From contig NIVC01000181.1 in assembly GCA_002269645.1 (NCBI GenBank), positions 399,693 through 463,692 on the forward strand: a DNA stretch of 64,000 nt, written 5' to 3'. The stretch comes from Macrostomum lignano. Taxonomy: Eukaryota. Under the pieces are notes generated by a model. It saw only the letters and a list, made by a program, of their open reading frames with translations. It had not been told where the DNA came from and did no database searches. A program made the position numbers and the translations under genes. This document shows positions 6,039 through 63,376 of this stretch, piece after piece (the first letter of the stretch is position 1; each line of letters begins with the position of its first letter).

Positions 6039-7020
6039 GATTCCTCGTCGATAACTTATTCTAGTCTGCGAAGTGGCAGAGTGACTCAGGAAGATGAGGT
6101 GCGACCATGTGCACGGACAATCTAAGCATCTTATGACGCTTGAAATTCCATTCCGAGACCTTCCCTCGTAGCAACCTGAATTTTGGGCAGAGAATCCTCT
6201 TACAGAAGAGACCAAACGTACTTCTGATTCACAAAGCCATCAAATCAAAGGACTGAGAAACAAAACTGCACCAACTTTGGTCTCAGGTAATGGCGGTGGC
6301 GTGAAGAGGTTGGATTGCACATATCAATGGCGTGGAGTTGAGACGGGGATCTACTGGGAAAAGTACGCTAGCTACGAATGCATTGATTTTTATTTCGACT
6401 TGAAAATAATTGTTTGTATTTTTTAAACATTGTACTCGTAAAAAGCCACTTGCGAACTTTTTTTATCGTACATGTACGAGTATTGCCCTGAAAGGAACAA
6501 CAATTTCATGCGATAAAAATGCGTTTTCTTCAAAACTCGAACCAGTTACCAGAGCTAGATTGTCTGTTTCACTTTCTCGCATAGTTTTAGCATGCTCAGA
6601 TTTCTTCTAATGTTTGCCTGTTTTTTATTGACGCGATACAACATGCTCTACTGGCTATTGCTGGCAGTAGCAGTGTTCAAATTCGACATTCGAAGCAATC
6701 ATGTCAACAGTTCCCTCCACTGCTACCTTGCGTCTGTTTGCGTCAGCCAAACATTTTTTATAGAAAGATAGGCTCCATCTTTTGATAGATAAGTTTCAAT
6801 TCCTGGTGTTTATGAGTAATGATCTTTTTGATTTGTAGACAAAGCACATGACGGCATCCCGCGACATCAACTAGCGCGCCTGAATCAAAACAGAGACCTT
6901 TGTTTGTTTTTGCATTTCATTTCATTTTTGATCTCGCCTTTTCTTCTCTGAATATAGTTTTCTACCCGAGGTAGTTGCAGGGCAAAGCTTCTCAGAACCA
7001 CTGTCCAAAATGATACAGGT

Positions 7021-7465
7021 GTCACTGGCGAGTAGCTAGTGTCACTGGTGAGCAGCTAGTGTCACTAGTGAGTAGCTAGTGTCACTAGTGAGTAGCTAGT
7101 GTCACTAGTGAGTAGCTAGTGTCCCTGGTGAGTAGCTAGTGTCACTAGTGAGTAGCTAGTGTCACTGGTGAGTAGGTAGTGTCACTGGTGAGTAGCTAGT
7201 GTCACTGGTGAGTAGCTAGTGTCACTGGTGAGTAGCTAGTGTCACTGGTGAGTAGGTAGTGTCACTGGTGAGTAGCTAGTGTCCCTGGTGAGTAGCTAGT
7301 GTCTCTAGTGAGCAGGTAGTGTCACTGGTGAGTAGCTAATGTCACTGGTGAGTAGCTAGTGTCACTGGTGAGTAGCTAGTGTCACTGGTGAGTAGCTAGT
7401 GTCACTGGTGAGTAGGTAGTGTCACTGGTGAATAGCTAGTGTCACTGGTGAGTAGGTAGTGTCAC
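7021..7465. repeat. 20-bp minisatellite, about 22 copies (GTCACTGGTGAGTAGCTAGT)
   Basis: Tandem units read directly from the sequence, with few substitutions. Confidence 0.97.
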
Positions 7466-8626: not shown

Positions 8627-24856
<16,230 letters not shown>

Positions 24857-26250: not shown

Positions 26251-26400
26251 TGATTGACAGCTGTCGTCAAGCAAACAAAAGCTGCATCATTTTTGTGGGA
26301 AAGCAAGACAGTCTGCTCCGCTCTGACATGTGAAATCAGAAAAGTCAAACAACGTCACTCTTTCGACCGGAAACACGTGCCAATCCGATGTACATAAATT
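26251..26400 (+). promoter_or_regulatory. Conserved promoter cassette of the peptide gene family (representative copy; present upstream of all 12 intact genes)
   Basis: TGA(T/C)TGACAGCTGTC(G/A)TCAA lies about 240 nt upstream of the ATG. CCGGAAA-CACGTG-CCAAT-CCGATG(C/T)GCATAAAT lies about 125-90 nt upstream. Both recur with few changes in every copy while the flanks diverge. Confidence 0.7.
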
Positions 26401-26490: not shown

Positions 26491-26685
26491 ATGAAGTGGC
26501 AACTCGCTCTCGGACTTTTGCTGTTCGCAGCCCTGGCCGTCGCCATGCCCAGCCAGGAGGAGAAGGCCATGGCCGAACGCGTGCTGGAGGAGACTCTGTC
26601 CAACCTGGACGAGTCCAGCGTGTCGGAGGAGCAGATTCCGAAGCTGAAGAAGAAGATCTTCCGTGTTCATGTTAGGTTCGGTTAG
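26491..26685 (+). CDS. Secreted prepropeptide copy 1 (64 aa; tail KLKKK-IFRVHVRF-G)
   Basis: MKWQLALGLLLFAALAVA signal-like N-terminus, acidic spacer, Lys cluster and terminal Gly before the stop; intronless; one of 12 paralogs. Confidence 0.9.
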   Translation: MKWQLALGLLLFAALAVAMPSQEEKAMAERVLEETLSNLDESSVSEEQIPKLKKKIFRVHVRFG

Positions 26686-28425: not shown

Positions 28426-29709
28426 CAGTGTTTTCATCAAAATCGTGGTGTCTGCAGTCACAGATAGTAAATTTTAGTGTTGAAGATGTCGAAATTATAT
28501 TTGAACTGCTCGTGAACATGATTGCAACAATATCTTTTCATTAGACACTTTTTAGAGAGACAATTAAAAAACTATCCAATAAAATCGCGGCCCATGATCC
28601 AGCCGGCGTCCATGTCATCAAGAAGATATCGCGGCAAAATATTTTTGCTGAAAAACATCAATCACGCGCTCGTAGCTGCTGACCGCTTAAGACAACTTCA
28701 GAATCAGAATCGACCAGAGAGCGACCAAAATGAATCAGACAACTGGTTGGATTATTGCGAGCTAGTCTTCGCGGAAAAGCCAAGCTTGAACCGAGCCCAT
28801 TCGAGGCCTGATAGAAATACAAATGCTCGCACTCTGTTCCGAGAAGGTACTGAGGTAGCAGCTCTGCAGATGTACTCACTCGAGATTTATCTGGCTTCTG
28901 CGCCATTCAATGTGTCCCTCAATTCTTGTTCTCAAGCCCTGGAATCATTGTACTGCACAAGTGCGGAAAAGGCTGAGCGGTAAGTACATGTATGATCTCT
29001 ACCAAATCAGCTAGAAAAAATTATATGGCACCCTCAGCAGCTTTGGCACCTTTTCCTTGAGGGTCATGTTAACGAGGTTTACAGTGGCCGAATCGTGGAC
29101 TAGGGAACAGATTGCCATTGCACTGCCTCAAGTTCCAGTACTAGCAGCAATGCATTAAACTGATGGGCACCTAGGCTCTCTCAGACAATGCTACACATCA
29201 CTTGAGGGAAGGCTGCTTTGGAGGTATTTTAATGTTCTGAAACAATCATAAATAGCTATTTGATGAGCCCTCCTAATCGTAAGTTCAACTGTGTTAATTC
29301 AGGAAAGCATTCCTCAAGCATGGGCTCGAATCGCCATTCTATCTATACACTTTCCTGAGCCGAGGAATTACTCGTACCTCTGCTGCAAGCGGCTGTCAAT
29401 TAACTTTACAGTGCAGCTGGCCAAGAGTAAAATAGAAAGCGGCAAGTCGAATACACTTGCATAGAAAGAGTTCCTGTGAGTTACCTGCTTGATTGACGGC
29501 TTTCATCAAACAAATATATTCTGCGAGATATGCGAGCTCTGCTCACGTGAAAGCCTATAACTCAAACATCATCGCAGCTGCCAGACCGGAAACACGTGCC
29601 AATCCGATGCGCATAAATACATACCTCTCAACTGCTCAAGAACTCAACTTCAAACTCGACTCAATCTACACACAGCTCGAAGACTCGACTCGACTCGACT
29701 CAAACAATC

Positions 29710-29928
29710 ATGAAGTGGCAACTCGCTCTCGGACTTTTGCTGTGCGCAGCCCTGGCCGTCGCCGAGCCCTCACGAGAGGAGAAGGCTGAGGCCATGGCCG
29801 CTCTGGAGGCTCTGTCCAACGTTGACGAGTCCAGCATGTCGGAGGAGGCCGTGGACACCGCCAAGAAGTGGCTCAGAGTTAGGGCCAGGGTTAGGGTCGG
29901 ATCCAGGAGGAGGTCTAGGTCCGGTTAG
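29710..29928 (+). CDS. Secreted prepropeptide copy 2 (72 aa, type II; tail KK-WLRVRARVRVGSRRRSRS-G)
   Basis: Same signal peptide and promoter core as the family, a divergent acidic spacer and an Arg-rich tail. Confidence 0.9.
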   Translation: MKWQLALGLLLCAALAVAEPSREEKAEAMAALEALSNVDESSMSEEAVDTAKKWLRVRARVRVGSRRRSRSG

Positions 29929-31862: not shown

Positions 31863-32708
31863 TTAACTATTTGGAAGCCAAAGGCCTGCACTGCAGGCCA
31901 TACCGAAACGGCCCAGAAACCCAGAGATTTAAAAATGTCTATAGCATCAAAAACCATCTCCCAATCACTAAAGCAAGTGCCCAGTATGGCCTGCTGTGCA
32001 GGCCATGACTGATTTAAAGACGTCCATTATGCATTTCCATTGTGTTTTCACTCAAATGGGAAATGTTAAAGGGGAAATAAAGCGTGGATGAATTAGCATG
32101 GATCTGGACAGAGACCAGGATTTCCGGGACATTGGCTGCAGCAAAATACTGTCTTCTTAGCTGGAACGTCAGGTTTCAAATTCGGAATCGTTTGCTTGGG
32201 CGAGTCTGGGCTTCCGTTGCTGGGAGTCGTCCGTGTATATGTGGTATCCTTCGCCCAGCACTTCGCGACTAAGCTCAGCAACAACTCTCGCTCTCTTCCT
32301 CGCCATTTTCTGCACTCTCCTGCTGGAACTCCCTGACTGCCAACCACATTCGCTCATTGGTCCATGTGACAAGACTGTGGTGAGAAACTCTTCAGTCAGG
32401 AAGATTGATAAAAAACTCAAAAACCGTCGAATCATTGCTTGATAAAGCGTCTTCCGAATCGGAATCGAGTCCCAGTCTACGCAAGGCGTCACTTTTAGCT
32501 GTCCTATTCGGCGGCGTAGAAGCCATTTGTGGGTAGGAAGGTTTGAACAGGAGCTAGCTGAAAAACTATGTGATATACTTTACTTCTGGGCTTCTAGGGT
32601 GTGCACTCGATTCAGCAAAAAAGACAAATTTGTCTATGGACTGCTCTGCAGGCGTTTGGGCTTTTAAGCCATCTTACAGAACCAAGCTTGGGCGCGAAGT
32701 GGTTTTAA
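31863..32708 (-). mobile_element. Degenerate piggyBac-like insertion with TTAA target duplication
   Basis: TTAA at 31863-31866 and 32705-32708; right end AAGTGGTT-TTAA. The internal minus-strand reading VVAELSREVLGEGYHIYTD resembles the piggyBac catalytic-Asp region. The mirror arm (about 55640-55665) has the empty site. Confidence 0.65.
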
Positions 32709-33090
32709 GCACGTAGTACCGATGAATACCGTCTGGTAAAAGTCACTGATTTCACTAATGGGAAGTCAATAAATAATTGAATGTGGCATTAATCGAACCG
32801 ATAGACGATGAAAAATAACAATTTTCTTTGCAAATGCTTTCCTTTCACGGTCGATAGCTAACAATATTTTGAATTAGTATAAGAAATCGATGAAGTCTGT
32901 TTTGTGCTCAGTGATTATTTAACTGATTGCGTTTGTCTTATTATTTGGTAAAACTGATCAGCGAACAAGCTTCGTATATTTCACCAATAGTGTTTAGGAC
33001 TGTGCTGTCATAGTCAGAGTTCAGAGTCCGGTCAGCTTGTGAGTCGTCAGTGCCAGTTAGCCTTAAACTTCAGTGTGGCGACAGACATAT

Positions 33091-33285
33091 CTAACCGATG
33101 CGGACCCTAACCCTGAAGATCTTCTTCTTCAGGTCCATGGCCTTCTCCTCCGACACGTTGGGCTCGTCCAGGTTGGACAGAGTCTCCTCCAGCACACGTT
33201 CGGCCATGGCCTTCTCCTCCTGGCTGGGCACGGCGACGGCCAGGGCTGCGCACAGCAAAAGTCCGAGAGCGAGTTGCCACTTCAT
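33091..33285 (-). CDS. Secreted prepropeptide copy 3 (64 aa; tail DLKKK-IFRVRVRI-G)
   Basis: Intact paralog with the promoter cassette at about 33395-33500. Confidence 0.9.
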   Translation of the reverse strand: MKWQLALGLLLCAALAVAVPSQEEKAMAERVLEETLSNLDEPNVSEEKAMDLKKKIFRVRVRIG

Positions 33286-34062
33286 GATTGCTTGAGTCGA
33301 GTTGAGTCGAGTCTTCGAGCTGTGTGTAGATTGAGTCGAGTTTGAAGTTGAATTCTTGAGCAGTTGGGAGTTACGAATTTATGCACATCGGATTGGCACG
33401 TGTTTCCGGTCGGAGGAGCGACGCTGTTTGACCTGTCTTCTTTTAACGGAGCAGAGTCTGGGTGACTGAGCAGTAATTGCTCTTTTGATGACAGTGAGCA
33501 ATTAAACAATTAACGCGAGAATGAATTTCAAGTAGAAGTGTATTCGCCTAGTTTAAAGCTCATCAATTAAGTTTATTGACAGATTCTAATGGTTAAGGTT
33601 CGTTGGTATTTGTCCCCTTCATTTTTTCTCGGGGTATTTCCTAATATTTTTAAAGGCTACATAACCGAAATAGAAGAAATTTAAATTATCTAATTAACTA
33701 TATTATCTTAGTAAAGGCAGCGGAGCTGTGTGAAATTTAAGCGACACAGGCAAGTGACAGAAATCTAATTGCAGAGACAGATTTATTATATATTTTCAGG
33801 AATGGCATTTCCGTGTGCTAAATTAGACTTGGACTTCTAGCGTTCTCGTAAGTAGTCAGTGAATCGAAAAAAAGAATGCCCTTGTCATGAAATAGGAAAA
33901 CATTACAAATTCTGAGTCTAAACTCTTTATGAGGCTCATACTCATATACCTAAAACAAGGTGAACTAAAACGGTAAACGGCAGTAACAAGTGAAGGTGGC
34001 TAATCGATCATTATTGACTATCTACTTCAGTATTATCAATAGTTACATATATCTTGTCTAGC

Positions 34063-36996
34063 TGTTGTGTTCTAGTGACACAGAGAGTTTCGTTTGATTG
34101 TAGCTTTTTGAGCTCAGAGATACACATCTCGCTCACAATATATTTATAGAGATCAAACTCCTACTTGCACGTTGCACGTTGCACGTTGCAATCTCCTACT
34201 CATTCTAGTATGAGTACAGTATACACCCACGCATTCAATAAGGCCAATAGTTCATTGTCAGTAGTCAGTTCATTGCGCGAGCATTGTCAATCACAACATT
34301 CTTTCCCCTTCCGGAAGAGGATAACACGCCGGTTGCCGTCGAGCTCGAGTCGACCTTCGGAGCGCCGCCTCGGGTAGTGGCTCGCCAGGCGGTGGTGGCG
34401 GCACCGTCGCCGCCCTGGCCACCGGCTCAGGCAGCAGGAGCGCCTCGAACAGCTCGTCCGCTCGGTCTTTGCTTCGCCTTCGCTTGTTGGTGTAGTCGGC
34501 ATTCTTAGCTCGCCTCTGTGCGATGCTGTCGCGCAGGTCGTCGTCGCTCGGCAGTTGCTCTTGAGTCGGCCTGAGTAGTTTGCCTGAGGAGCCGCCGCGA
34601 CCTCGCGGAAGATGTCGATTTCGATCTTGTCCCATGGACCTGCTGGCCACTCGTCTGTTGAGGCTTGCCAGACTCCTCCCCCAGAGTGCAGGCCGTGCAG
34701 TTCTCGACGTAGTCCTCCACCTGCCGGTCAATTCCAGGAAACCAGACCGTGTCGCGGCACCGCTGCATAGACCGAAAGACACCCGGATGCCCTTCGTGGG
34801 CCTCCTCGATGACTTGAAGTCGCAGGCTCGTCGGGATGATCGCGCGTTCACCACGACCGAGGCACTGACCGTACTTCCAGCAGAACAGCTCGTCCCGGAC
34901 GTTGAAGTACGGCTTCAGAGAGCTGTCCACCTTCGTCGGCCAGCCACCCGAGATGTACCGCAGAACCGGCTGCAGCACTTCGTCCTCCTTGGTCGCCGTT
35001 GCCAGTGCGTCTGCCGTCAGCGTTGTCTTCGAGTTGACGACTGCGTAGACGTAACCTCCTCATCAGTCTCCTCGGCTGGAACACGCTCCTTCGTGGCCCA
35101 TCTGGACAGCATGTCCGCGCACACTTGTTGTCAGCGCCAGGGATGTGCTCAAACCGGACGTCGTAGCCGCGAAGTCTCGACCCATCGATGATGTGCCCCA
35201 TGCCTTTCGAGTCGAGCAGAGTTGTCAGGGCCTTGTGGTCGGTGCGCAGCGTTACTCGTCTGCCGTATAGATAGTAGTGCCAGCGTTCGATGCTTCATAC
35301 ACAGGCCAGGGCTTGTCGCTCTCCGGCTGAGTATCGCTTTTCCGCTGGGCTGAGTGCTCTCGATGCGAACGCGATTGGCACCTCTTTTCCGTTTTGTACT
35401 TGGCTGAGTACCACCCCAGTCCGTCTAGACTTGCATCGCAGGTGACGTACGTCTCAGCTTGGCAGTCAAAATGAACTAACACTGGGCTGCTGGTTACGGC
35501 TGACTTGAGTGTACGGAAGGCTGTACGTTCTCGCTCACCCCAGTGCCAGTCCGCGTCCTTTTTGAGCAGTTGTCTCAGAGGCTCGGCGATCGCTGAGTAA
35601 TGCGGTATGAACTTGTGCAAAAAGTTCACTGCGCCGAGGAACGATTAAATTTGCGCGACCGTTTTTGGCTCAGGAATTCTTAGAATTGCGTCGATGTTGG
35701 ACTTGGTCGGTTTGAGGCCGTCTGCAGAGATGACCAATCCGAAGAAATCCACGCTCGCCTGCCGGAATTTGCACTTCTCTCGATTGAGTGTAAAGCCTTC
35801 GCGGTGAATTCGCCCTAAGACTTCTCGGAGGTTCTTGTCGTGCTCAGTCTCGTGCTTGCCGTGCACCAGGATGTCGTCCACGATGTTGATGGCGCCTGGA
35901 GCTCCTCGAAGCACCGTCTGCAGGGCTCGCTGGAAGGCAGCTCCGGAGCTGGATAGCCCGAATGTCACCACAGTGAACTGGTACAGGCCGGCATCGGTGA
36001 TGAAGCACGTTAGTCCTCGAGAGTCTGGATGCAGTGGAATCTGCTGGTAGCCTTGACGTAGGTCCAGCTTGCTGAAGCACTTCGAGCCGTTGATGCTGGC
36101 CGATAGGTCCTCGATTGACGGTACCGGATAGCTGTCCGCGATCACCGCCCGTTGACCTGCCGCAGATCCACGCAGAGACGAACCTTGTTGGACTCCTTCT
36201 TGCGCGTCACGACTACGTTGCTGACCCACTCGGACGCGTCGACTTTCTCAATGATGCCCTGTTGCTCCATCCGGCTGATCTCTGACGTCACTTCGTCCTT
36301 CAGGCCGATCGGCAGCTTCCGCATTGGCTCAGACACTGGCTTGACCGAGGCGTCGATCTTTGTCCGGTTAATGAAGCTCTTGGACCGGCCCAGACCGTCG
36401 AAGATTCCGGAGAAGTCGCGCTCGATCGTAGTCTCGCTGATGCTCATCACTCTTTTCGCCTTGGAAGATTCTGAATCCGAGGGCCTAAAACAGGTCGCGG
36501 CCCAGGATCTTCGCTCTTTTGTCGGCGACATAGAATGTGGCTTCTGTCCAGATGTCGTTAAACGTCACTGGAAGCTCGACCTTGCCGATGGTTTTGATCG
36601 CAAATCCGCCGTATGCCTCCAGTCTTGTGCTCGTCGGGAGCAGCGGGTGCCTAGCGAAGGATTTCTTGAACGTCTCCGTGTTGAGCAATGAGACGGCAGC
36701 ACCGCAGTCGATTTGTAGTCGGATCATTTGTAGTCGCAGAATAAGTTGTCGATGCTCCTGTTGTTCACTGCCAAGACCGCAAGGCTAGACTTTGATTGTA
36801 GCTTTTTGAGCTCAGCGATACACATCTCGCTCACAATATATTTATAGAGATCAAACTCCTACTTGCACGTTGCGCGTTGCACGTTGCAATCACCTACTCA
36901 TTCTAGGATGAGTACAGTATACGCCCACGCATTCAATAAGGCCAATAGTTCATTGTCAGTAGTCAGTTCATTGCGCGAGCATTGTCAATCACAACA
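34063..36996 (-). mobile_element. Internally deleted Ty3/Gypsy LTR retrotransposon (K02A2.6/Mag-like pol)
   Basis: 3' LTR 34063-34298 (TGTTG..CAACA); 5' LTR 36791-36996, missing its U5 end; polypurine tract GGAAGGGGAAAGAA at 34299-34312; 5-bp TSD CTAGC (34058-62 and 36997-37001). Frameshifted pol: protease LQIDCGA, RT SKLDLRQGYQQI..IVDDILV, RNase H TCDAS..RTDHKAL, integrase zinc finger HEGHPG..CTAC. Gag, PBS and the integrase core are missing. Confidence 0.93.
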
Positions 36997-38103
36997 CTAG
37001 CAATGCAGGGAAAATAAGTCGGGATCATGAAAACGGGAGCATTGTGTGAGAGCGTCAGATTAAGAAAATGAGCGGCGCTAGGGGAGAAGGAGAGGGAAGA
37101 GGTTGAGTGCGAAGCAGGGAGGTAGAGACAGTGGTAGGGAGAAAGAGTTACGGAAAGCATAGAAAGAAGAAATGGTTCGAGAAATTCAGTAGCTACAGTA
37201 GTAGTTTCACAGCTAAATGCCCGAAAGTTGATGAGTGTATTAGCTCTGCTTCCGTCTGTCTCCATCTGAGTTTCTACGCATATCTGATAAGCCCTAACGC
37301 AGGCTAGCGTCACAAGTCGAAAGACAAGTCAAGGCGTATTTGAGCCTGATATAAAATTTACCCAAGCAACAGGCTTGCTTGCTTTGAGAGTTTTAACCGT
37401 TTCGTTTGACCTGAAGCTACCAGTCTAAGCGTGCAATTTGGACTCCGAGGAGGTGCTACTTTTCTCCAACAAGGCCGTCGGCTGTTTTGAAGCTGCCGAT
37501 TTGACTAAAAACATCACTGTTACAGTCAATTAGTCCGCATGCGGGGTGTCAACCCTGACTTTTAGGCGGCCGACAGACAAAGACTACTGGCAGGCACTAC
37601 TCGATGCAAATAGTGCTCGTGCTCAGCGACTCAGCACTCACGAGTGCGACCTCGGCACCAGCGCCTCCCTCCCACAAAATCTGATTCTATCTTGGCAAGT
37701 GAAGAATCGATCTGGACATCAAGATCTATTTAAACAAAGCAGTTTCAATGATGAATTTTTAGTTATTAAATTCGTATCCTTGACTGAATGGAAGTTAGGC
37801 CGGATGATCTATTACAAGCAGCCAATCATTAGCTACGAGTTATATGCATTTAGGTACCAGTCCTCCACACAGCGACTTTCGAATTGCAAATTGAAACTAA
37901 AATAGCTCAACGATACGACTTTTAACTTTTAGTTTTGCTGAGTGCTTGAACGGGTTGTGATTGTTGTTATATTTGGTAGAACTAATCAGTAAACAAGTGC
38001 TTTTAAAATTTCACTCTGAATACCGGTCACAAGTCAGGGTTCAGAGTCAAGCCAGTCATATACGGTGAAGGGACTTCAATCTCAGGTGTATCTGAGAGCT
38101 CAT

Positions 38104-38298
38104 CTAACCAATCCTGACACGAAGACGGACGAACTTCTTCTTCAGCTTCGGAAACTGCTCCTCCGACACGCTGGACTCGTCCAGGTTGGACAGAGTCTCC
38201 TCCAGCACACGTTCGGCCATGGCCTTCTCCTCCTGGCTGGGCACGGCGACGGCCAGGGCTGCGCACAGCAAAAGTCCGAGAGCGAGTTGCCACTTCAT
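38104..38298 (-). CDS. Secreted prepropeptide copy 4 (64 aa; tail KLKKK-FVRLRVRI-G)
   Basis: The true start is taken as the conserved MKWQ ATG at 38298, not the upstream ATG of the ORF track. Confidence 0.9.
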   Translation of the reverse strand: MKWQLALGLLLCAALAVAVPSQEEKAMAERVLEETLSNLDESSVSEEQFPKLKKKFVRLRVRIG

Positions 38299-39599
38299 GA
38301 TTGCTTGAGTCGAGTCTTCGAGCTGTATGTAGATTGAGTCGAGTTTGAAGTTGACTTCTTGAGCAGTTGGGAGTTCCGAATTTATGCGCATCGGATTGGC
38401 ACGTGTTTCTGGTCGGAGGAGCGACGCTGTTTGACCTGTGTTCTTTCACGTGAGAATAGCGGAACAGAGACTGTCTTGCTTTCCTACAAGAAATGATGCA
38501 GCTTTTGTTTGCTTGACGACAGCTGTCAGTCAAACAGATAACTCTTGAGAATTTTCTCTCTGAAACTGGTCTATAGACCATTCGGATTAAGCTATTTGAC
38601 TTTTAGTTGCATAGTAGAGTTTACCGTCAGTCTCTTACAGCTGACTTGTAATTGTTTGCGCAGAATAGATTGATGTTTGAAATGACCACTCGTACTTCAC
38701 TAGTGGAAATCAGCAGTGAAAATTTCTTTGCAATGTGTCATATAGCAGTCATCAAATAGGCATTGGTGATAGCCTCAGAGAAGTATTAAAATTTGCAAAT
38801 CCAAAATTAAGGATTGATTAATTTTGGCCAAGGTGCCCTGCATTACAATGCGTGTGCCTGACTGTTCAGGCACAGAGCTCAGAAGATAGGGTCAAGGAGC
38901 AACTCCACACTTGAATAATATACATGTTAGATCCAGTAGAATAAAACAGTCTTTAATAGACTGGTTTGAGTTGCTTTCCTGCCAAGGTTTTTTGCGTCTA
39001 AATGACAGCTCGTAAGACGTTGTCAATACGTATCGGAGATTGACCCACTGCATGCTACTTTTGTACCTAGTTGATGCGGGACTCAGGGTCTGATCGGCAG
39101 ATGGAAAGCAGATATCAGCAAGCAGCAGAGCCAACCTGCTCATTCTCTCCGGGACAGGGGCAAACACGTTTTCATGACCTTGCTATTATTATTGCAGATT
39201 TTCTTCCTTTACTCAGCCTCAGCGATGGCTGAATAATGCGGTTAAAACAGAGACAGAAGTCACATGACAAATGCACGCAACCTTCTAATTCATTCTGCGT
39301 TCTAAATTTCCTATCAATCCATCTTAAGCCTTTGTGATTTTCAATGAGATTCGACTGGTTTGTGCCGAGGCATTTGTGGATGATGCTGAGTACCGATCAG
39401 TCTGACCTCCTCCATGGTCAAGCTGATGGAGGTACCGTTGCTCTGGCGCCTTCTTTTCAGTGGATCTGAAAAATGACTCCACCGAAAGCACGCTGCACGT
39501 CCTGGTTGATAAACTACTAGCATCTCACCAGGTGGATCATGTACATGATCAGCCATCGCACGGCCATAACCAGCTTGCTGGGCCACAAGAGGACGGTCC

Positions 39600-40870: not shown

Positions 40871-41507
40871 GAGTAATATTGGAATCATAGGACAGTATCT
40901 CATTTTTTAAATGTCTCACAATCCTAACAGAGCTAAAAAATCTGTGAGACTTTGGATATTATTTACTTCATCAGTCCAGATAGATTTATAGTTAATTCTG
41001 AAACAAGAGTTAATCATCAGACTGGGCTTTATAAAGCTTGAAGAATTCCTTATGACGCATGACATCGATCGGTGTGTCATTCTGGAGTAAAATGCCTGAA
41101 CCGCACAGAAGAGCAGCAATACAGCTACTCGCTGAATCCTGTCCTAAATCTGGCTTAGGGATTATTACCTCTGCCTCTAGGGACTGTTTAAACTGTGAAC
41201 AGCGACCAAGAGACAAATCGGCCGCAATGAATTGCATACACCTGGACTGAGAAACTCTCGAGTCTTACCTGTTTGACTGACAGCTGTCGTCAAGCAAACG
41301 AAAGCCGCATCATTTCTTGTAGGAAAACAAGCATGTCACTGCTCTGTTCTGTTTACATGAAAGCAGAAAAGTTAAACAGCGTCGCTCCTCCGACCGGAAA
41401 CACGTGCCAATCCGATGTGCATAAATTCGTAACTGCCAACTGCTCAAGAATTCAACTTCAAACTCGACTCAATCTACACACAGCTCGAAGACTCGACTCA
41501 AACAATC

Positions 41508-41726
41508 ATGAAGTGGCAGATCGCTCTCGGACTTCTGCTGTGCGCAGCCCTGGCCGTCGCCGAGCCCTCACGAGAGGAGAAGGCTGAGGCCATGGCCGTT
41601 CTGGAGGCTCTGTCCAACGTTGACGAGTCCAGCATGTCGGAGGAGGCCGTGGACACCGCTAAGAAGTGGCTCAGAGTTAGGGCCAGGGTTAGGGTCGGAT
41701 CCAGGAGGAGGTCTAGGTCCGGTTAG
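41508..41726 (+). CDS. Secreted prepropeptide copy 5 (72 aa, type II; tail KK-WLRVRARVRVGSRRRSRS-G)
   Basis: Near-identical to copy 2 in CDS and 3' flank, with a different upstream promoter region. Confidence 0.9.
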   Translation: MKWQIALGLLLCAALAVAEPSREEKAEAMAVLEALSNVDESSMSEEAVDTAKKWLRVRARVRVGSRRRSRSG

Positions 41727-44474: not shown

Positions 44475-44663
44475 CTAACCGAAATGAATATGGATGAACT
44501 TCTTCTTCAGCTTCGGGCTCTGCTCCTGCGACAGGCTGGATTCGTCCAGGTTGGACAGAGTCTCCTCCAGCACACGTTCGGCCTGGGCCTTCTCTTCTTG
44601 GGTGGGCATGGCGACGGCCATGGCTGCGAACAGCAAAAGTCCGAGAGCGAGTTGCCACTTCAT
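44475..44663 (-). CDS. Secreted prepropeptide copy 6 (62 aa; tail KLKKK-FIHIHF-G)
   Basis: Conserved MKWQ ATG at 44663; lies in the palindrome spacer. Confidence 0.9.
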   Translation of the reverse strand: MKWQLALGLLLFAAMAVAMPTQEEKAQAERVLEETLSNLDESSLSQEQSPKLKKKFIHIHFG

Positions 44664-45854
44664 GATTGCTTGAGTCGAGTCGAGTCTTCGAGCTGTGTAG
44701 ATTGAGTCGAATGTGAGATTGTTGTGTTGAGCAGTCGGGAGTTCCGAATTTATGCACATCAGATTGGCACGTGTTTCCGTTCCGAGGAGAAACGTTTGAC
44801 TTGTCTGCATTCACGAGAGCAGAGTCTGAGTGACATCTCTTTATTTGATGACAGCTGTCAGTCAACTAGTTACATCAAAAGAGCATTTTCAGTGTAATTG
44901 CATTCAGCTCACTGCAGTGTATTTGACCTTAGTTATTTTCGAAGTTACATTTGATGAAGCCTCTATTGGTTGAAGTACGCTCGTGTCTGTTGACCTACGA
45001 GCTACCCTTGAATTACTGTCAAGGTCTTTCTAAATATTTTAAAAAGCACGTCAAATAAAGAACAAATCGATTTAGACGTGATTTGCTCTACGTCTAATCA
45101 CTAATTAACCAGTGGGGCTCCTGGATCATGAGACCGGTAGAGATGGAGAAAGTGAGAAAAGTAGGCTGAGGATGAAGAGAAATGATTGAGATGAAGAGAG
45201 AGGCCTGTAGTGATAGAGGAAGACGGATTAATAGTTGATAGTAGAGGAAAGGAGACACTCGGGTGTATATCAAAAAACGTTAAAAGTATTTTAACAGCTG
45301 GTTACGATCCATGATGTACTATACGGAAGTTATTATACTGAGTCTCTTGATAAAAGTTTCTTAAATAAGTGTATATTGTTACACTCCCTCTCATCGGATA
45401 AGTTCAAAACTCAATAGTTCAGTCGTCTGCTCGTAAACTGTCTGTAAAGTTTCAGCAACACCTAATACTGCTATGCCGTACTAGAAGGGCACGGCTTGAG
45501 AGTGCAATAATGTCTAGACTACGAGAGCGCGTTAGTGTAAAGTTAATATTTAACAGCAGAAAAAAGTCGACCATATACATCCAGACCGTCCGTTCCGTTC
45601 CGTTCCGTCGATAATGGCCACTTAATGGCCACTCAATCAAATACTTAAATTGTCTATGGCTAAATTTGATGCTCCTCCCCATACCCAGTCTTTTCACGTC
45701 CAGTAAAATTAAGTTGAAATGAATTCCGGCAGTTATTAACTCCATAAAAGATAAAGTACGCTTTTCCAGACACTATTTTTAGTGCTCATATCGAGCGTGA
45801 TCATATCTCATATCAGGACAGGGCCATAGACAAAAATAACAATAATTAAAGCCG

Positions 45855-46935
<1,081 letters not shown>

Positions 46936-47519
46936 GTAGACTTTATATTTAAAATGGCGGGCACTATGAGAGTTGTATCATACTCTATCGCACAATAAAA
47001 GTGGTTTAAAATATATATGCCATAGCCTTGAGGTCAGTATGAGTTTAAATCCCGAGATCCTTCTTTTCAGCTCTTGTTTAACAGCCCAAGTTAGCAATTA
47101 AAAAATTGAGCAAAACCACGAAGCTTACGTAGGAAAAAATAGAAGCAATTTAGGCAGCGAGGTATGTTCAAAGCAAAGAGTATCAAGCTAACAATTTGCA
47201 CGGAACTCTGAGTATTTTTGGCAAACATTGTCCATGACAAGTACAGTAAAGAAACTTAGCAAAATAAGACGCTGTTAGAAATGAAAACAAAACGCAACGC
47301 GCATGCAAGAGCAGAAGACAAATTAGTTTTGCGTAACCAGTTGGCGCTAAAAATTCGAAATAGAATCGTCGAGTACGATCGAGAGCTACCCGGAATCCAT
47401 AGCTTGACGGACTTCTTCATTGCAGTCATGATGGCTCAATGATGTCCTTGTTCTCTGGAGTCAGCGCATTTAGCCACAGCGTTGTGTCTTTAAGCTGAGC
47501 TCCCACAACGAGTACTCGT

Positions 47520-48409: not shown

Positions 48410-48604
48410 CTAACCGATGTGGACCCTAACCCTGAAGATCTTCTTCTTCAGATCCATGGCCTTCTCCTCCGACACGTTGGGCTCGTCCAGGTTGGACAGA
48501 GTCTCCTCCAGCACACGTTCGGCCATGGCCTTCTCCTCCTGGCTGGGCACGGCGACGGCCAGGGCTGCGCACAGCAAAAGTCCGAGAGCGATCTGCCACT
48601 TCAT
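48410..48604 (-). CDS. Secreted prepropeptide copy 7 (64 aa; MKWQIAL; tail DLKKK-IFRVRVHI-G), chimeric
   Basis: The 5' region mirrors copy 5; the body and 3' flank match copies 3 and 9. Confidence 0.9.
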   Translation of the reverse strand: MKWQIALGLLLCAALAVAVPSQEEKAMAERVLEETLSNLDEPNVSEEKAMDLKKKIFRVRVHIG

Positions 48605-49229
48605 GATTGTTTGAGTCGAGTCTTCGAGCTGTGTGTAGATTGAGTCGAGTTTGAAGTTGAATTCTTGAGCAGTTGGAAGTTGCTCATTTATGCGCATCGG
48701 ATTGGCACGTGTTTCCGGTCGGAGGAGCGACGCTGTTTAACTTTTCTGCTTTCATGTAAACAGAACAGAGCAGTGAAATGCTTGTTTTCCTACAAGAAAT
48801 GATGCGGCTTTCGTTTGCTTGACGACAGCTGTCAGTCAAACAGGTAAGACTCGAGAGTTTCTCAGTCCAGGTGTATGCAATTCATTGCGGCCGATTTGTC
48901 TCTTGGTCGCTGTTCACAGTTTAAACAGTTCCTAGAGGCAGAGGTAATAATCCCTAAGCCAGATTTAGGACAGGATTCAGCGAGTAGCTGTATTGCTGCT
49001 CTTCTGTGCGGTTCAGGCATTTTACTCCAGAATGACACACCGATCGATGTCATGCGTCATAAGGAATTCTTCAAGCTTTATAAAGCCCAGTCTGATGATT
49101 AACTCTTGTTTCAGAATTAACCATAAATCTATCTGGACTGATGAAGTAAATAATATCCAAAGTCTCACAGATTTTTTAGCTCTGCTAGGATTGTCAGACA
49201 TTAAAAAATGAGATACTGTCCTATGATTC

Positions 49230-50157
49230 CAATATTACTCGACTTTACTTGACTGCAGGATGGTCTGTAGGCACAGCGGGGAGGCGAGGGTCGCCCATTC
49301 CGCTAGCCCCCGAAGGCCACAGACAGGCAGAGGCGTGGGGCCGGTCAGGGTGGTCCGCTTCTCGCCGTCTTGGCGAGGGTGCCTGTCAACTCTTTTCCTG
49401 GAAACGCTTGCGTGCCCTTGGATCCACTTCAGCCTGACAGTAGTGCTGCTGGCCAGAAGGTTGAGCTGCCGGTTGCAGTCAGCGACTGTCTGGTATTTCA
49501 TTGTGGTGTGGTAAAGGGCCTGTAAGGCTGCTTGGCTGTCAAAGTGAACCTACCAGTGTGCTGGACATGCGTGGCAATGACGCGGCCGTTGATGATGATG
49601 CAGACCCCAAAGCCGCCGTAGCCGTCTTTGATGGAATTCGTCCGTGTAACAAAGGACCTCCTGGAAATTCCAGCGGACAGTGGCGGACAGAGGTGATGGT
49701 GACTTTGTAGCGCTGAAACTGTTTTAGAGTTCGAGGTTCACCAGCAGATCAAACGTGGAGCCCGCCACCGTCTCTCAAGTCTTTGAGGTAGAGGTCGGCG
49801 TGAGGCAGGAGCTTGCGCTTAGCCATGGCTCGATGGGACAGGAAACAAATGCCAGCGCTAATCAAACGGCGGCAGTCTTGGCGGCTTCCCTGCCAACAAA
49901 GATGTTCAGTAGGGAATGTTAAGGAAAGCGTTGAGGCAATCATAAGGAGTAGACGCGTACTCCTGAGAGTCTCAAGGCAGATCTTCATCAGCAGGGCGCT
50001 AGCCCAGATCAGGCCGCCATACGAGATAGCAGGCCTAACCATTGCAGTGCAGATCCACCAGAGACGTTTTGGAGTGAGCCCCCAGGTGGTGCCGACGGCC
50101 CTGTGCAGCCGCGCGAGGACTGCGAGGGCGCTCTTGGATTTGTCTGAACGTGGGCCC
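49230..50157 (-). mobile_element. Mirror copy of the LINE relic (39955-40870)
   Basis: Reverse complement of the left-arm LINE segment. Confidence 0.8.
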
Positions 50158-51900
50158 AGTCTCTTGCAGCTGACTTGTAATTGTTTGCGCAGAATAGATA
50201 GATGTTTAAAATGACCACTCGTACTTCACTAGTGGAATGTGTCATATAGCAGTCATCAAATAGGCATTGGTGATAGCCTCAGAGAAGGATTAAAATTTGC
50301 AAATTCAAACTTATGGATTTATTAATTTTGGCCAAGGTGCCCTGCATTACAATGCGTGTGCCTGACTGTTCAGGCACAGAGCTCAGAAGATAGGGTCAAG
50401 GAGCAACTCCACACTTGAATAATATACATATAAGATCCAGTAGAATAAAACAGTCTTTAATAGACTTGTTTGAGTTGCTTTCCTGCCAAGGTTTTTTTGC
50501 GTCTAAATGAAGCTGTAGACTGTCATACGATCGGAGATTGACCCACTTGCTACTTGACCAGGATGCGGGACAGGGGAGGCGATGGGCGATTCAGCAAGCA
50601 CAGAGCCGCCTGCTCATTCTCTCGGGACGAGGCAACACTTTTCATGGCCTTGCTTTGGATCCCTTCAGCCTCAGTAGTGCTGCTGGCCAGAAGGGTTGAG
50701 CTGCCTGCAGTCAGCGACTGTCTGGTATTTCATTGTGGTGTGGTAAAGGGCCTGTAAGGCTGCTTGGCTGTCAAAGTGAACCTACCAGTGTGCTGGACAT
50801 GCGTGGCAATGACGCGGCCGTTGATGATGATGCAGACCCCAAAGCCGCCGTAGCCGTCTTTGATGGAATTCGTCCGTGTAACAAAGGACCTCCTGGAAAT
50901 TCCAGCGGACAGTGGCGGACAGAGGTGATGGTGACTTTGTAGCGCTGAAACTGTTTTAGAGTTCGAGGTTCACCAGCAGATCAAACGTGGAGCCCGCCAC
51001 CGTCTCTCAAGTCTTTGAGGTAGAGGTCGGCGTGAGGCAGGAGCTTGCGCTTAGCCATGGCTCGATGGGACAGGAAACAAATGCCAGCGCTAATCAAACG
51101 GCGGGCAGTCTTGGCGGCTTCCCTGCCAACAAAGATGTTCAGTAGGGGAATGTTAAGGAAAGCGTTGAGGCAATCATAAGGAGTAGACGCGTACTCCTGA
51201 GAGTCTCAAGGCAGATCTTCATCAGCAGGGCGCTAGCCCAGATCAGGCCGCCGTACGAGATAGCAGGCCTAACCATTGCAGTGCAGATCCACCAGAGACG
51301 TTTTGGAGTGAGCCCCCAGGTGGTGCCGACGGCCCTGTGCAGCCGCGCGAGGACTGCGAGGGCGCTCTTGGATTTGTCTGAACGTGGGCCCAGTCTCTTG
51401 CAGCTGACTTGTAATTGTTTGCGCAGAATAGATAGATGTTTAAAATGACCACTCGTACTTCACTAGTGGAATGTGTCATATAGCAGTCATCAAATAGGCA
51501 TTGGTGATAGCCTCAGAGAAGGATTAAAATTTGCAAATTCAAACTTATGGATTTATTAATTTTGGCCAAGGTGCCCTGCATTACAATGCGTGTGCCTGAC
51601 TGTTCAGGCACAGAGCTCAGAAGATAGGGTCAAGGAGCAACTCCACACTTGAATAATATACATATAAGATCCAGTAGAATAAAACAGTCTTTAATAGACT
51701 TGTTTGTTTTCCTGAAGCTTTTTTTTCTAATGACAGCTCGTAAGACGTTGTCAATACGTATCGGAGATTGACCCACTGCATGCTACTTTTGTACCTAGTT
51801 GATGCGGGACTCAGGGTCTGATCGGCAGATGGAAAGCAGATATCAGCAAGCAGCAGAGCCAACCTGCTCATTCTCTCCGGGACAGAGGCAAACACGTTTT
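49430..51900. repeat. About 1.23-kb tandem duplication in the right arm (second LINE relic copy at about 50620-51390)
   Basis: Identical ORF pairs are offset by 1232-1234 nt (49501/50733; 50009/51243). Confidence 0.85.
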
Positions 51901-52668
51901 CATGACCTTGCTATTATTTTTGCAGATTTTCTTCCTTTTCTCAGCCTCAGCGATGGCTGAATAATGCGGTTAAAACAGAGACAGAAGTCACATGACAAAT
52001 GCACGCAACCTTCTAATTCATTCTGCGTTCTAAATTTCCTATCAATCCATCTTGAGCCTTTGTAATTTTCAATGAGATTCGACTGGTTTGTGCTGAGGCA
52101 TTTGTGGATGATGCTGAGTACCGATCAGTCTGACCTCCTCCATGGTCAAGCTGATGGAGGTACCGTTGCTTTGGCGCCTTCTTTTCAGTGGATCTGAAAA
52201 ATGACTCCACCAAAAGCACGCTGCACGTCCTGGTTGATAAACTACTAGCATCTCACCAGGTGGATCATGTACATGATCAGCCATCGCACGGCCATAACCA
52301 GCTTGCTGGCAACAATTACAAGTCAGCTGCAAGAGACTGACGGTAAACTCTACTATGCAACTAAAAGTCAAATAGCTTAATCTGAATGGTCTATAGACCA
52401 GTTTCAGAGAGAAAATTCTCAAGAGTTATCTGTTTGACTGACAGCTGTCGTCAAGCAAACAAAAGCTGCATCATTTCTTGTAGGAAAGCAAGACAGTCTC
52501 TGTTCCGCTATTCTCACGTGAAAGAAGACAGGTCAAACAGCGTCGCTCCTCCGACCGGAAACACGTGCCAATCCGATGCGCATAAATTCGGAACTCCCAA
52601 CTGCTCAAGAAGTCAACTTCAAACTCGACTCAATCTACATACAGCTCGAAGACTCGACTCAAGCAATC

Positions 52669-52863
52669 ATGAAGTGGCAACTCGCTCTCGGACTTTTGCT
52701 GTGCGCAGCCCTGGCCGTCGCCGTGCCCAGCCAGGAGGAGAAGGCCATGGCCGAACGTGTGCTGGAGGAGACTCTGTCCAACCTGGACGAGTCCAGCGTG
52801 TCGGAGGAGCAGTTTCCGAAGCTGAAGAAGAAGTTCGTCCGTCTTCGTGTCAGGATTGGTTAG
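52669..52863 (+). CDS. Secreted prepropeptide copy 8 (64 aa; protein identical to copy 4)
   Basis: Conserved ATG at 52669; mirror partner of 38104-38298. Confidence 0.9.
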   Translation: MKWQLALGLLLCAALAVAVPSQEEKAMAERVLEETLSNLDESSVSEEQFPKLKKKFVRLRVRIG

Positions 52864-55071: not shown

Positions 55072-55266
55072 ATGAAGTGGCAACTCGCTCTTGGACTTTT
55101 GCTGTGCGCAGCCCTGGCCGTCGCCGTGCCCAGCCAGGAGGAGAAGGCCATGGCCGAACGTGTGCTGGAGGAGACTCTGTCCAACCTGGACGAGCCCAAC
55201 GTGTCGGAGGAGAAGGCCATGGACCTGAAGAAGAAGATCTTCAGGGTTAGGGTCCACATCGGTTAG
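55072..55266 (+). CDS. Secreted prepropeptide copy 9 (64 aa; tail DLKKK-IFRVRVHI-G)
   Basis: Mirror partner of copy 3; one R>H change in the tail. Confidence 0.9.
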   Translation: MKWQLALGLLLCAALAVAVPSQEEKAMAERVLEETLSNLDEPNVSEEKAMDLKKKIFRVRVHIG

Positions 55267-57436: not shown

Positions 57437-57631
57437 CTAACCGAACCTAACATGAACACGGACGAACTTCTTCTTCAGCTTCGGAATCTGCTCCTCCGAC
57501 ACGTTGGGCTCGTCCAGGTTGGACAGAGTCTCCTCCAGCACACGTTCGGCCATGGCCTTCTCCTCCTGGCTGGGCATGGCGACGGCCAGGGCTGCGCACA
57601 GCAAAAGTCCGAGAGCGAGTTGCCACTTCAT
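57437..57631 (-). CDS. Secreted prepropeptide copy 10 (64 aa; tail KLKKK-FVRVHVRF-G)
   Basis: Mirror partner of copy 1 by 5' and 3' flanks. Confidence 0.9.
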   Translation of the reverse strand: MKWQLALGLLLCAALAVAMPSQEEKAMAERVLEETLSNLDEPNVSEEQIPKLKKKFVRVHVRFG

Positions 57632-59353: not shown

Positions 59354-59542
59354 ATGAAGTGGCAACTCGCTCTCGGACTTTTGCTGTTCGCAGCCATGGC
59401 CGTCGCCATGCCCACCCAGGAGGAGAAGGCCCACGCCGAACGTGTGCTGGAGGAGACTCTGTCCAACCTGGATGAATCCAGCCTGTCGCAGGAGCAGAGC
59501 CCGAAGCTGAAGAAGAAGTTCATCCATATTCATTTCGGTTAG
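59354..59542 (+). CDS. Secreted prepropeptide copy 11 (62 aa; tail KLKKK-FIHIHF-G)
   Basis: Conserved ATG at 59354. Confidence 0.9.
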   Translation: MKWQLALGLLLFAAMAVAMPTQEEKAHAERVLEETLSNLDESSLSQEQSPKLKKKFIHIHFG

Positions 59543-63187: not shown

Positions 63188-63376
63188 ATGAAGTGGCAAC
63201 TCGCTCTCGGACTTTTGCTGTTCGCAGCCATGGCCGTCGCCATGCCCACCCAGGAGGAGAAGGCCCACGCCGAACGTGTGCTGGAGGAGACTCTGTCCAA
63301 CCTGGACGAGTCCAGCCTGTCGCAGGAGCAGAGCCCGAAGCTGAAGAAGAAGTTCATCCATATTCATTTCGGTTAG
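63188..63376 (+). CDS. Secreted prepropeptide copy 12 (62 aa; protein identical to copy 11)
   Basis: Direct duplicate: about 59130-59850 matches about 62950-63670. Confidence 0.9.
   Translation: MKWQLALGLLLFAAMAVAMPTQEEKAHAERVLEETLSNLDESSLSQEQSPKLKKKFIHIHFG

Follow-up and report, generated by a model that had tools for sequence, protein, structure and literature searches.

To what kind of gene does a short, C-terminal run of strictly alternating hydrophobic and basic amino acids belong, and what might such a gene be for? The question is raised by a stretch of 64,000 nucleotides of Macrostomum lignano DNA, here called the window (GenBank assembly GCA_002269645.1, contig NIVC01000181.1, i.e., C181:399693-463692), and within it by an open reading frame (ORF) of 64 codons at 26491-26685 on the plus strand. 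Positions given without a contig are those of the window. The last 14 codons of this ORF (51-64), along with its stop, occupy 26641-26685 (+) and read AAG CTG AAG AAG AAG ATC TTC CGT GTT CAT GTT AGG TTC GGT TAG, which in translation is K L K K K I F R V H V R F G stop. The protein encoded by 26491-26685 is laid out as MKWQLALGLLLFAALAVA / MPSQEEKAMAERVLEETLSNLDESSVSEEQIPKL / KKK / IFRVHVRF / G / stop, that is, as a signal peptide, an acidic pro-region, a basic site, a tail, and a terminal Gly.

With moderate confidence, we view this gene as a member of a large family of intronless, TATA-driven prepropeptide genes, the products of which would be secreted, membrane-active defense peptides, antimicrobial or, in a wider sense, cytolytic. 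The 6- to 10-residue tails would stand at the short end of a superfamily, the longer members of which resemble ordinary linear cationic host-defense peptides. The logic is that of frog-skin, defensin, and venom peptide genes: a conserved prepro part and a hypervariable, cationic, amphipathic mature part are found together over many clustered paralogs, with the charges of the two parts compensating.

The four tails to which an earlier, sequence-only reading of this DNA had drawn attention, i.e., IFRVHVRF, FVRLRVRI, WLRVRARVRV, and FIHIHF, were all found, at the positions and on the strands listed in the table. The strict alternation claimed for them holds as well, each short tail switching between hydrophobic and basic residues as often as its composition permits. 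As residues 1 and 2 are both hydrophobic, however, the alternation starts from residue 2, a point absent from the earlier reading. All 14 of the 14 distinct short tails reach the maximum, with alternating runs of 5 to 9 residues. For a single tail such alternation is weakly significant (shuffle P of 0.02-0.2), and paralogs are not independent of one another. Because shuffle tests of single peptides are weak, substitutions between paralogs were used instead. Over 40 short-tail coding sequences, located in the window and elsewhere in the genome, the tail columns have undergone at least 21 amino-acid state changes, and 19 of these were within class, where the classes are R/H on one face and V/I/L/F/A/W on the other. 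The expectation for random single-base, non-synonymous changes from these codons is 44% within class, from which the binomial P is 1.3e-5, and the contention that paralog substitutions keep the pattern is borne out. The two changes that break class gave GFHVHFH its N-terminal Gly and FHLHLP its C-terminal Pro. Judged by these substitutions, the binary pattern is real and is maintained by selection.

The hydrophobic moment of the short tails peaks at 160-180 degrees, in 13 of the 14 at 180. The peak moment is 1.0-1.35 among Arg-type tails and about 0.6 among His-type tails, versus 0.2-0.8 at the helical 100 degrees. By this measure the short tails are amphipathic solely as extended strands, and their hydrophobic positions hold strong beta-formers (mean Chou-Fasman P-beta of 1.25 versus P-alpha of 1.06). 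Longer tails are more mixed, 8 of the 17 peaking near 100-110 degrees, i.e., as helices, with 6 peaking at 180, 2 at 145, and 1 at 160. We infer that the short tails may form beta-sheets or fibrils, that they may act on membranes, and that the pro-region may inhibit them prior to cleavage.

What would be released from these precursors? The signal peptide has the consensus MKWQLALGLLL[FC]AALAVA, which by inspection displays a hydrophobic core as well as small residues at -3 and -1, and by the -3/-1 small-residue rule it is predicted to be cut after A-V-A. At the other end of the pro-region, a basic pair stands directly before the tail in 53 of the 54 unique proteins, this being KK in nearly all of them, with one RK. 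The residues ahead of that pair differ by subfamily (KLKKK, DTAKK, DNAKK, KLRKK, ELQKK, KLEKK), with KK alone constant. Of the two products that had been proposed, i.e., an 8-mer or a 13-mer that includes the lysines, the 8-mer is favored, since KK is the only conserved element, and sole conserved cleavage motif, before the tail; the 13-mer is unlikely, as residues upstream vary. All window copies close with GGT-TAG. The stretch GGTTAGAT is invariant in 12 of 12 of them, and the 24 bases preceding it are, in the DNA alignment, the most variable part of the gene.

The terminal Gly codon, GGT, shows neither synonymous nor non-synonymous change across the 40 short-tail genes, and relatives mostly end in G, GK, or GKR, though a few long members lack such an end. 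Peptide amidation ordinarily takes a C-terminal Gly as its donor. From the invariant Gly, or from G/GK/GKR in relatives, an amidated product is indicated, such as IFRVHVRF-NH2, of predicted monoisotopic mass 1071.645. This Gly, the conserved KK, and the distant long-tailed paralogs described below had all gone unremarked in the sequence-only reading. Each window gene most likely releases a C-terminally amidated peptide of 6-10 residues in which hydrophobic and basic residues alternate. The predicted window products would be IFRVHVRF-NH2, FVRVHVRF-NH2, FVRLRVRI-NH2, IFRVRVHI-NH2, IFRVRVRI-NH2, FIHIHF-NH2, and a WLRVRARVRV peptide.

The processing that we infer, as with the secondary structure and the biological activity of what is processed, would run as follows. 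Following removal of the signal peptide after AVA, the pro-peptide would enter the regulated secretory pathway with its cationic tail neutralized by the acidic, helix-prone pro-region (Chou-Fasman P-alpha of 1.15 versus P-beta of 0.79 in the focal gene). A subtilisin-like convertase would then cleave after the conserved KK, a carboxypeptidase would remove the basic residues found 3' of Gly in GK and GKR members, and a peptidylglycine alpha-amidating enzyme would turn the terminal Gly into a C-terminal amide. The genome holds domain-level matches over cut-off for both kinds of enzyme, 37 to the proprotein-convertase P domain (PF01483) and 46 to Cu2_monooxygen (PF01082). The Cu2_monooxygen matches often stand in tandem clusters, within open frames of 490-673 residues (C861:376-426 kb, C757:32-66 kb, C4862:6-32 kb, and others), and a PHM/DBH-like copper monooxygenase family apparently is expanded in this genome.

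For the focal gene, the charge count given by the sequence-only reading is correct: with His not counted, KLKKKIFRVHVRF carries +6 versus -7 for the spacer MPSQ...EEQIP. The broader suggestion that tails are charge-matched to the acidic pro-region stands in part. Across the family the pro-region has a net charge of -5 to -12, while the KK site plus tail (tails of 6-34 residues) carries +2 to +18, and among 53 unique members the two co-vary with a raw r of -0.74. Independent contrasts, computed over a tree of upstream and signal DNA, give r of -0.43 to -0.77 depending on the branch-length floor, with 22 of 34 informative contrasts opposite in sign; as r varies with that floor, this is moderate support. 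Mean charges of pro-region and of KK site plus tail, respectively, are -7.2 and +2.8 for His-short tails, -6.6 and +5.3 for Arg-short tails, -8.5 and +8.7 for mid-length tails, and -10.6 and +13.6 for long tails. That is, the balance is incomplete, long tails overshooting (net about +3) and His tails undershooting (net about -4), so that His-type tails, at about -7 versus +3, are the part of the claim that does not stand. The tendency for more acidic pro-regions to go with more basic tails is real but partial.

The window contains 12 intact paralogs, including the focal gene, as found by six-frame scan, with 7 on the plus strand and 5 on the minus strand. FIHIHF is encoded three times, FVRLRVRI, IFRVRVHI, and WLRVRARVRV-GSRRRSRSG twice each, and IFRVHVRF, FVRVHVRF, and IFRVRVRI once each. 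A 31-base promoter block, GGAAACACGTGCCAATCYGATGYGCATAAAT, has exactly 12 matches in the window versus 0 expected, one copy 5' of each of the 12 ORFs and about 90-120 nucleotides before the ATG. This shared upstream promoter module carries the CGGAAACACGTGCC block. Its core, i.e., CGGAAA[A/C]ACGTGCC, then some 10 nucleotides, then GCATAAAT, is also seen upstream of more distant paralogs and of one contig from outside the M. lignano assembly (below), where it lies at -64 to -124, mostly at about -90 to -105. As the ORFs of the family are uninterrupted, its genes appear to be intronless. On this evidence the window genes look real and co-regulated.

Beyond the window, six-frame matching to the M. 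lignano genome (764 Mb in 5269 contigs) yields at least 145 family copies, 143 of 145 of which lack internal stops. Contigs C619 and C618 hold near-identical copies of the cluster, in line with known assembly redundancy. From 40 further regions, 30 loci found by genome search, and the window, 53 unique precursors were obtained, which share the layout of signal, acidic pro-region, and KK and differ greatly in their tails. The tails include His-type 6-7-mers (GFHVHFH-G, FHLHLP-GK), Arg-type 8-10-mers, cationic peptides of 13-34 residues (e.g., GIRIRKVVRVIRNIKKVAHAIAN, FRIRIRWGRVARTMLRLI-GK, and WRIRLRRIRWRKVYRYARAAYRIYRHLH-GK), and hyper-basic tails (e.g., ...FFRRRRRRHYFVYHSRRRYYRRRYHRRHHVHIVAYH-G). 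Start codon, signal, KK, Gly, and stop nevertheless are kept across subfamilies having less than 50% mutual identity. GenBank gene models for M. lignano are RNA-seq-guided transcript assemblies that were passed through an expression filter based on reads per kilobase per million, or RPKM (PMC5730564), and annotated family members, among them Mlig015779, Mlig031167, Mlig015087, Mlig010060, Mlig004045, Mlig010443, Mlig010792, and Mlig025003, consequently are transcribed. Exact-sequence look-ups for transcript contigs of three members gave no match, a negative that carries no weight as to expression, since records of this genome may be missing there.

A second set of dense clusters consists of the His-type subfamily (GFHVHFH-G, FHLHLP-GK), located at C181:580-650 kb, C570:349-426 kb, C619:154-202 kb, and C4264:21-52 kb. 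Its pro-region differs, being acidic and Ser/Asp-rich (AESESKEDPSDSDDSK...). There also are a few degenerate or rearranged members (L047, at C618:509181-509363; L026 and L027, on C12 and C1113; proteins P0033, P0034, and P0036), including a frameshifted copy retaining only ...KKKFVRLRVRIG as well as copies with scrambled N-terminal halves. Some gene models are odd in that the pro segment is duplicated or two signal peptides are fused, and an older one is mislabeled as 'SERPIN domain-containing'.

Protein searches return matches only to M. lignano 'hypothetical proteins', and no Pfam family matches a family protein above its gathering score. The acidic helix matched the Gag1-like lock domain PF22991 at 19 bits versus a cut-off of 27, which we judge to be spurious. 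A profile search of 1.84 billion representatives, together with a word-index search, found no ortholog in any other flatworm and, outside of M. lignano, nothing credible except for one 929-bp contig; the same searches gave two weak matches, to repeat proteins of 2589 and 197 residues. The contig in question (L071, from Logan run SRR31628392) carries a gene at 541-813 that has promoter module, signal, and acidic pro-region in common with the family. Its tail, FLRVRLPRVRMPRVRLPRVRLPRLRVRFRWSKK, is a Pro/Arg-rich pentapeptide repeat, (LPRVR)n, that lacks a terminal Gly. Because it aligns to the M. lignano genome at only 77-78%, and only in the prepro-coding part, it is taken to be from another taxon. 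The tail strings and six BOX15 gene identifiers were found in no full text of the library searched, nor did the literature search return an account of the family for Macrostomum. The family would seem to be undescribed so far, though of a known kind, that is, a cationic defense-type prepropeptide family.

How did these genes come to differ mostly in their tails? Ratios of non-synonymous to synonymous substitution rates (dN/dS), which the sequence-only reading had suggested comparing by region across copies, were estimated as pooled Nei-Gojobori values over the 40 short-tail genes, with ten gapless 64-codon genes as a second set. For the signal, dN/dS is 0.35 pooled (0.15-0.35 over both sets), and for the KK site it is 0.15. 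For the pro-region it is 1.35 pooled (1.35-1.77 over both sets), with acidity retained. For the tail it is 0.84, with dS of 0.67 and dN of 0.56, about three times those of other regions. Within the ten gapless genes, KKK and Gly codons are invariant, and synonymous and non-synonymous divergence (pS and pN) are 0.355 and 0.258 in the tail versus 0.04-0.11 and 0.02-0.07 in the prepro part, that is, 3-15 times higher in the tail.

Between the copies at 41508 (+) and 48410 (-), identity is 95-100% across 1.5 kb upstream, through the 5' untranslated region and the signal codons, and then drops to 72% in the pro-region, 37% over site and tail, and about 45%, i.e., background, in the 3' flank. The contrast in divergence between prepro part and tail is due, at least partly, to recombination that homogenizes the 5' module. 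Local duplications, inverted as well as direct, of 1-1.7 kb and 90-98% identity, build the cluster. Together, this breakpoint and these duplications imply that old, divergent tail cassettes follow a promoter/signal module that is kept homogeneous.

The Arg-type short tails are encoded by hexamers, (AGG-GYY)n, in imperfect tandem array. Tail variants of 6, 8, and 10 residues differ by whole hexamers, with register kept. Codon usage in these tails is uniform and unlike that elsewhere in the family, AGG making up 46 of 54 Arg codons and GTG none of 49 Val codons, versus 43% and 39% in long tails. Hexamer structure and codon usage fit with length variation arising in part from slippage of a coding microsatellite. 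The family diversifies by three routes, that is, by direct or inverted duplication, by recombination, and by gain or loss of whole AGG-GYY hexamers. Both AGGGTT and the Gly-stop GGTTAG are rotations of the telomere hexamer TTAGGG (29866-29889, 55240-55251, 26671-26685).

Table. Parts of the focal gene, the other window paralogs, and the duplicated segments of the cluster
Feature	Position	Strand	Remarks
Promoter block of focal gene, GGAAACACGTGCCAATCCGATGTACATAAAT	26369..26399	+	ACGTG/E-box, CCAAT, TATA-like CATAAAT; about 95-120 nucleotides before the ATG
Signal peptide MKWQLALGLLLFAALAVA, codons 1-18	26491..26544	+	near-invariant among copies
Acidic pro-region MPSQEEKAMAERVLEETLSNLDESSVSEEQIPKL	26545..26646	+	net charge -6; -7 without trailing KL
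KKK, putative prohormone-convertase-type basic cleavage site	26647..26655	+	KK kept across all subfamilies
Predicted mature peptide IFRVHVRF, 8 residues	26656..26679	+	alternation from residue 2; divergence hotspot
GGT TAG, C-terminal Gly (putative amidation donor) and stop	26680..26685	+
Paralog KK-WLRVRARVRV-GSRRRSRSG	29710..29928	+	promoter block 29588-29618
Paralog KKK-IFRVRVRI-G	33091..33285	-	promoter block 33377-33407
Paralog KKK-FVRLRVRI-G	38104..38298	-	promoter block 38380-38410; inverted duplicate of 52669 copy
Paralog KK-WLRVRARVRV-GSRRRSRSG	41508..41726	+	promoter block 41396-41426
Paralog KKK-FIHIHF-G	44475..44663	-	promoter block 44748-44778
Paralog KKK-IFRVRVHI-G	48410..48604	-	promoter block 48686-48716
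Paralog KKK-FVRLRVRI-G	52669..52863	+	promoter block 52557-52587
Paralog KKK-IFRVRVHI-G	55072..55266	+	promoter block 54950-54980
Paralog KKK-FVRVHVRF-G	57437..57631	-	promoter block 57713-57743
Paralog KKK-FIHIHF-G	59354..59542	+	promoter block 59239-59269
Paralog KKK-FIHIHF-G	63188..63376	+	promoter block 63073-63103
Shared segment	39957-41645 / 48464-50154	+ / -	recombination or duplication breakpoint near signal/pro boundary, inside intronless coding sequence
Duplication pair	32705-34062 / 54275-55657
Duplication pair	37666-38663 / 52306-53300
Duplication pair	49418-50654 / 50655-51912

Apart from these genes, the window has a G+C content of 45%, its long ORFs are scarce, and microsatellites as well as a retrotransposon fragment are present, all of which marks it as eukaryotic. 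The retrotransposon fragment is of a Gypsy-like long terminal repeat element, lying within the cluster at 34291-36229 (-), with matches to reverse transcriptase (PF00078, 5.5e-24) and integrase zinc-binding (PF17921, 1.1e-16) domains. Simple repeats at 45855-46934, 9791-10016, 7019-7465, 10585-10984, and 15705-16048 include (CTA) x 360, (GATA) x 57, and several minisatellites of 20-51 bp. The CTA array, when read in frame, fully accounts for a 369-residue Ser/Val 'ORF' at 45855-46964. ORFs of 154-184 residues cross peptide genes in another frame, at 38027-38581 (-), 52386-52940 (+), and 62953-63417 (+). As these run over promoter, 5' untranslated region, and coding sequence, they most likely are read-through artifacts of stop-poor sequence rather than genes.

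Among known systems, frog-skin precursors of the preprodermaseptin type (dermaseptins, temporins) consist of a signal, an acidic spacer, a dibasic site, and one cationic peptide, often with a C-terminal Gly, and likewise have a conserved prepro part, a hypervariable mature part, and many paralogs. Layout and conservation pattern thus are the same as in the M. lignano family. The differences are that there is no sequence similarity, that the M. lignano site is KK rather than KR, that the M. lignano genes are intronless with a shared TATA promoter, and that tails in the window are of 6-10 residues and strand-amphipathic rather than helical. We know of no natural class shorter than the temporins, at 10-14 residues. 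With alpha-defensins and with the arminins of Hydra, an anionic pro-piece neutralizes the cationic peptide, and it was for defensins that the argument from charge co-variation was first made. The acidic pro-segment of the M. lignano family similarly balances the tail, roughly, with charges co-varying. In contrast to defensins, however, the M. lignano peptides are linear and mostly without Cys, and the balance is partial.

Conotoxins, as well as ant and scorpion venom superfamilies, are similar to the M. lignano family in combining a conserved signal and pro part with a hypervariable mature part, in tandem clusters, with raised divergence in the mature part alone. Conotoxins, unlike the products of the intronless M. 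lignano genes, are rich in Cys and come from genes of several exons, and the divergence contrast in M. lignano comes at least partly from 5' recombination. The precursors of flatworm FMRFamide-like peptides and I/L-amides share dibasic processing, Gly amidation, and, in some copies, RF-, RI-, or RL-amide ends. They differ in that the M. lignano mature peptide is not conserved and occurs once per precursor, in that the family is huge, and in that its long paralogs are strongly cationic.

Two further likenesses are to designed rather than natural peptides. Octamers of the form (X1Y1X2Y2)n-NH2, such as IRIKIRIK (IK8L), are described as forming beta-sheets, disrupting membranes, and being broadly antibacterial (PMC4330034). 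The Arg-type octamers likewise alternate hydrophobic (I/V/F/L) and cationic (R/K) residues, and FVRLRVRI and IFRVRVRI differ from IRIKIRIK mainly in that their N-terminus has a second hydrophobic residue. IRIKIRIK is synthetic, while the M. lignano peptides are predicted from genes. The designed heptapeptides acetyl-IHIHIQI-amide, acetyl-LHLHLRL-amide, and acetyl-IHVHLQI-amide form cross-beta fibrils in which His, on one face, binds Zn2+ (PMC10008563). FIHIHF, FHLHLP, and GFHVHFH share with these alternating aliphatic/His cores (IHIH, HLHL, HVH) and a predicted C-terminal amide. The natural His-type peptides, also known from genes, differ in having free N-termini, lengths of 6-7 residues, and other end residues. 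These likenesses to designed antimicrobials and amyloids are resemblances, not tests, and it is on likeness to IRIKIRIK-type peptides that the possible antimicrobial activity of the tails is founded.

A number of points weigh against the defense-peptide reading. It is argued from sequence, with activity, localization, and the peptides themselves all predicted. Octamers and hexamers would be very short for membrane disruption. FIHIHF, GFHVHFH, and FHLHLP would be nearly uncharged at seawater pH, making for a poor cationic-antimicrobial fit, and pro-regions of the His type are without a charge match unless His is protonated. AlphaFold2, given an alignment of 12 sequences, returned a low-confidence all-helix model of three helices (predicted local distance difference test score, pLDDT, of 63.5; predicted template modeling score, pTM, of 0.27), in which the tail is helical at about 60 and a helix, of low confidence, covers pro-region residues 22-38; this model we judge to be uninformative for an 8-residue tail. 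Convertase sites are more canonically KR or RR than KK. The 46 Cu2_monooxygen matches are at the domain level and may include dopamine-beta-hydroxylase-like paralogs as well as true amidating enzymes. The copy count, lastly, is inflated by assembly redundancy (PMC5730564).

From a different perspective, the same structural evidence applies equally to cytolytic or toxin-like peptides directed not at bacteria but at eukaryotes (predators, competitors, or prey protists), or instead to seminal-fluid peptides acting toward mates. Tandem clusters with a conserved prepro part and a hypervariable mature part are typical also of venom peptide genes, ant venom peptide genes being one example (PMC10800049), and both a pro-region dN/dS above 1 and rapid tail divergence are what antagonistic coevolution would lead one to expect. 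The sequence, however, carries no pointer to a particular target, and a toxin or reproductive role would be inseparable from an antimicrobial one on these grounds; we consider such a role to be unlikely. Unlikely as well, in our estimation, is that the short tails are natural, encoded counterparts of designed self-assembling peptides. Arg octa- and decamers would then be cationic cross-beta assemblies on membranes or mucus, while FIHIHF-NH2, FHLHLP-NH2, and GFHVHFH-NH2 would be pH- or Zn2+-switched amyloid-like fibrils, with all of them kept soluble within the granule via the acidic pro-peptide and written by expansion and contraction of (AGG-GYY)n. Were that true, no shorter ribosomal functional amyloid or antimicrobial peptides would be known, and this would be one of few instances in which a microsatellite directly writes a binary-patterned peptide.

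That these instead are precursors of neuropeptides or hormones, i.e., of amidated peptides signaling to receptors or peptide-gated channels, is very unlikely despite a layout of signal, dibasic site, and C-terminal Gly that is standard for prohormones. Flatworm neuropeptides include RFamides and I/L-amides, IFRVHVRF-NH2 (copy 1) and FVRVHVRF-NH2 both terminate in RFamide, other copies would supply I-, L-, F-, and H-amides, and convertase and amidating-type enzyme domains are matched in the genome. Yet the mature part is least conserved and the prepro part conserved, which is the reverse of neuropeptide genes. Tail length ranges from 6 to 34 residues, the last residue may be F, I, L, V, H, P, C, or yet another, and there is no constant C-terminal motif, the ends being VRF, VRI, VHI, IHF, VRL, IHI, HFH, HLP, or those of long, unrelated tails. 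There are, in addition, at least 145 copies with one peptide per precursor, long paralogs are highly cationic and amphipathic (+7 to +18), and no homolog was found in other flatworms. Equally hard to credit, or slightly harder, is a reading in which the functional product would be the acidic pro-peptide, for example as a negatively charged releasing factor of the duo-gland adhesive system, with the basic tail needed in the granule solely as a counter-ion or for sorting. In M. lignano, the Lys/Arg-rich adhesive protein Mlig-ap1 is predicted to be detached by a small secreted molecule of negative charge (PMC6410801), each member would release a 30-47-residue peptide of net charge -4 to -12, and most subfamilies have a helix-prone LEAL(S/A)N(L/V)(D/E)ES-type motif. 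The pro-region, though, evolves at dN/dS above 1, the tail pattern is under purifying selection and the amidation signal strictly conserved, neither of which a counter-ion needs, and the link to the releasing factor is speculative. Scarcely credible, finally, is that a repeated element carries these as chance or otherwise non-functional ORFs, their alternation resulting from a hexanucleotide repeat that is neutral with regard to coding. Arg tails are indeed (AGG-GYY)n with homogeneous codon usage, and the genome is repeat-rich and partly redundant, with a Gypsy-like fragment in the cluster. Still, 143 of 145 copies are open, start, signal, KK, Gly, and stop are conserved across subfamilies less than 50% identical, and His-type and long tails retain the architecture without an AGG-GYY repeat. 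Given as well the class-preserving substitutions, the conserved promoter, and the transcript-based gene models, the repeat-artifact explanation is already largely refuted.

A 2023 survey of helminth genomes reports that flatworms lack the classical lophotrochozoan antimicrobial-peptide groups, with the flatworm repertoire undescribed and Macrostomum unmentioned (PMC10414684). If the defense-peptide reading is true, then this would be the first large, genomically defined defense-peptide family in a free-living flatworm. As M. lignano is a transgenic and RNA interference-amenable model of regeneration, the prediction is directly testable there, and the compact, conserved promoter module should drive cell-type-specific secretory expression. 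The family also offers a clear case of modular evolution within an intronless gene, i.e., of a recombining prepro module joined to old tail cassettes. Its short tails would supply a panel of natural, amidated, binary peptides of 6-10 residues, mirroring laboratory designs for beta-sheet antimicrobials and catalytic amyloids.

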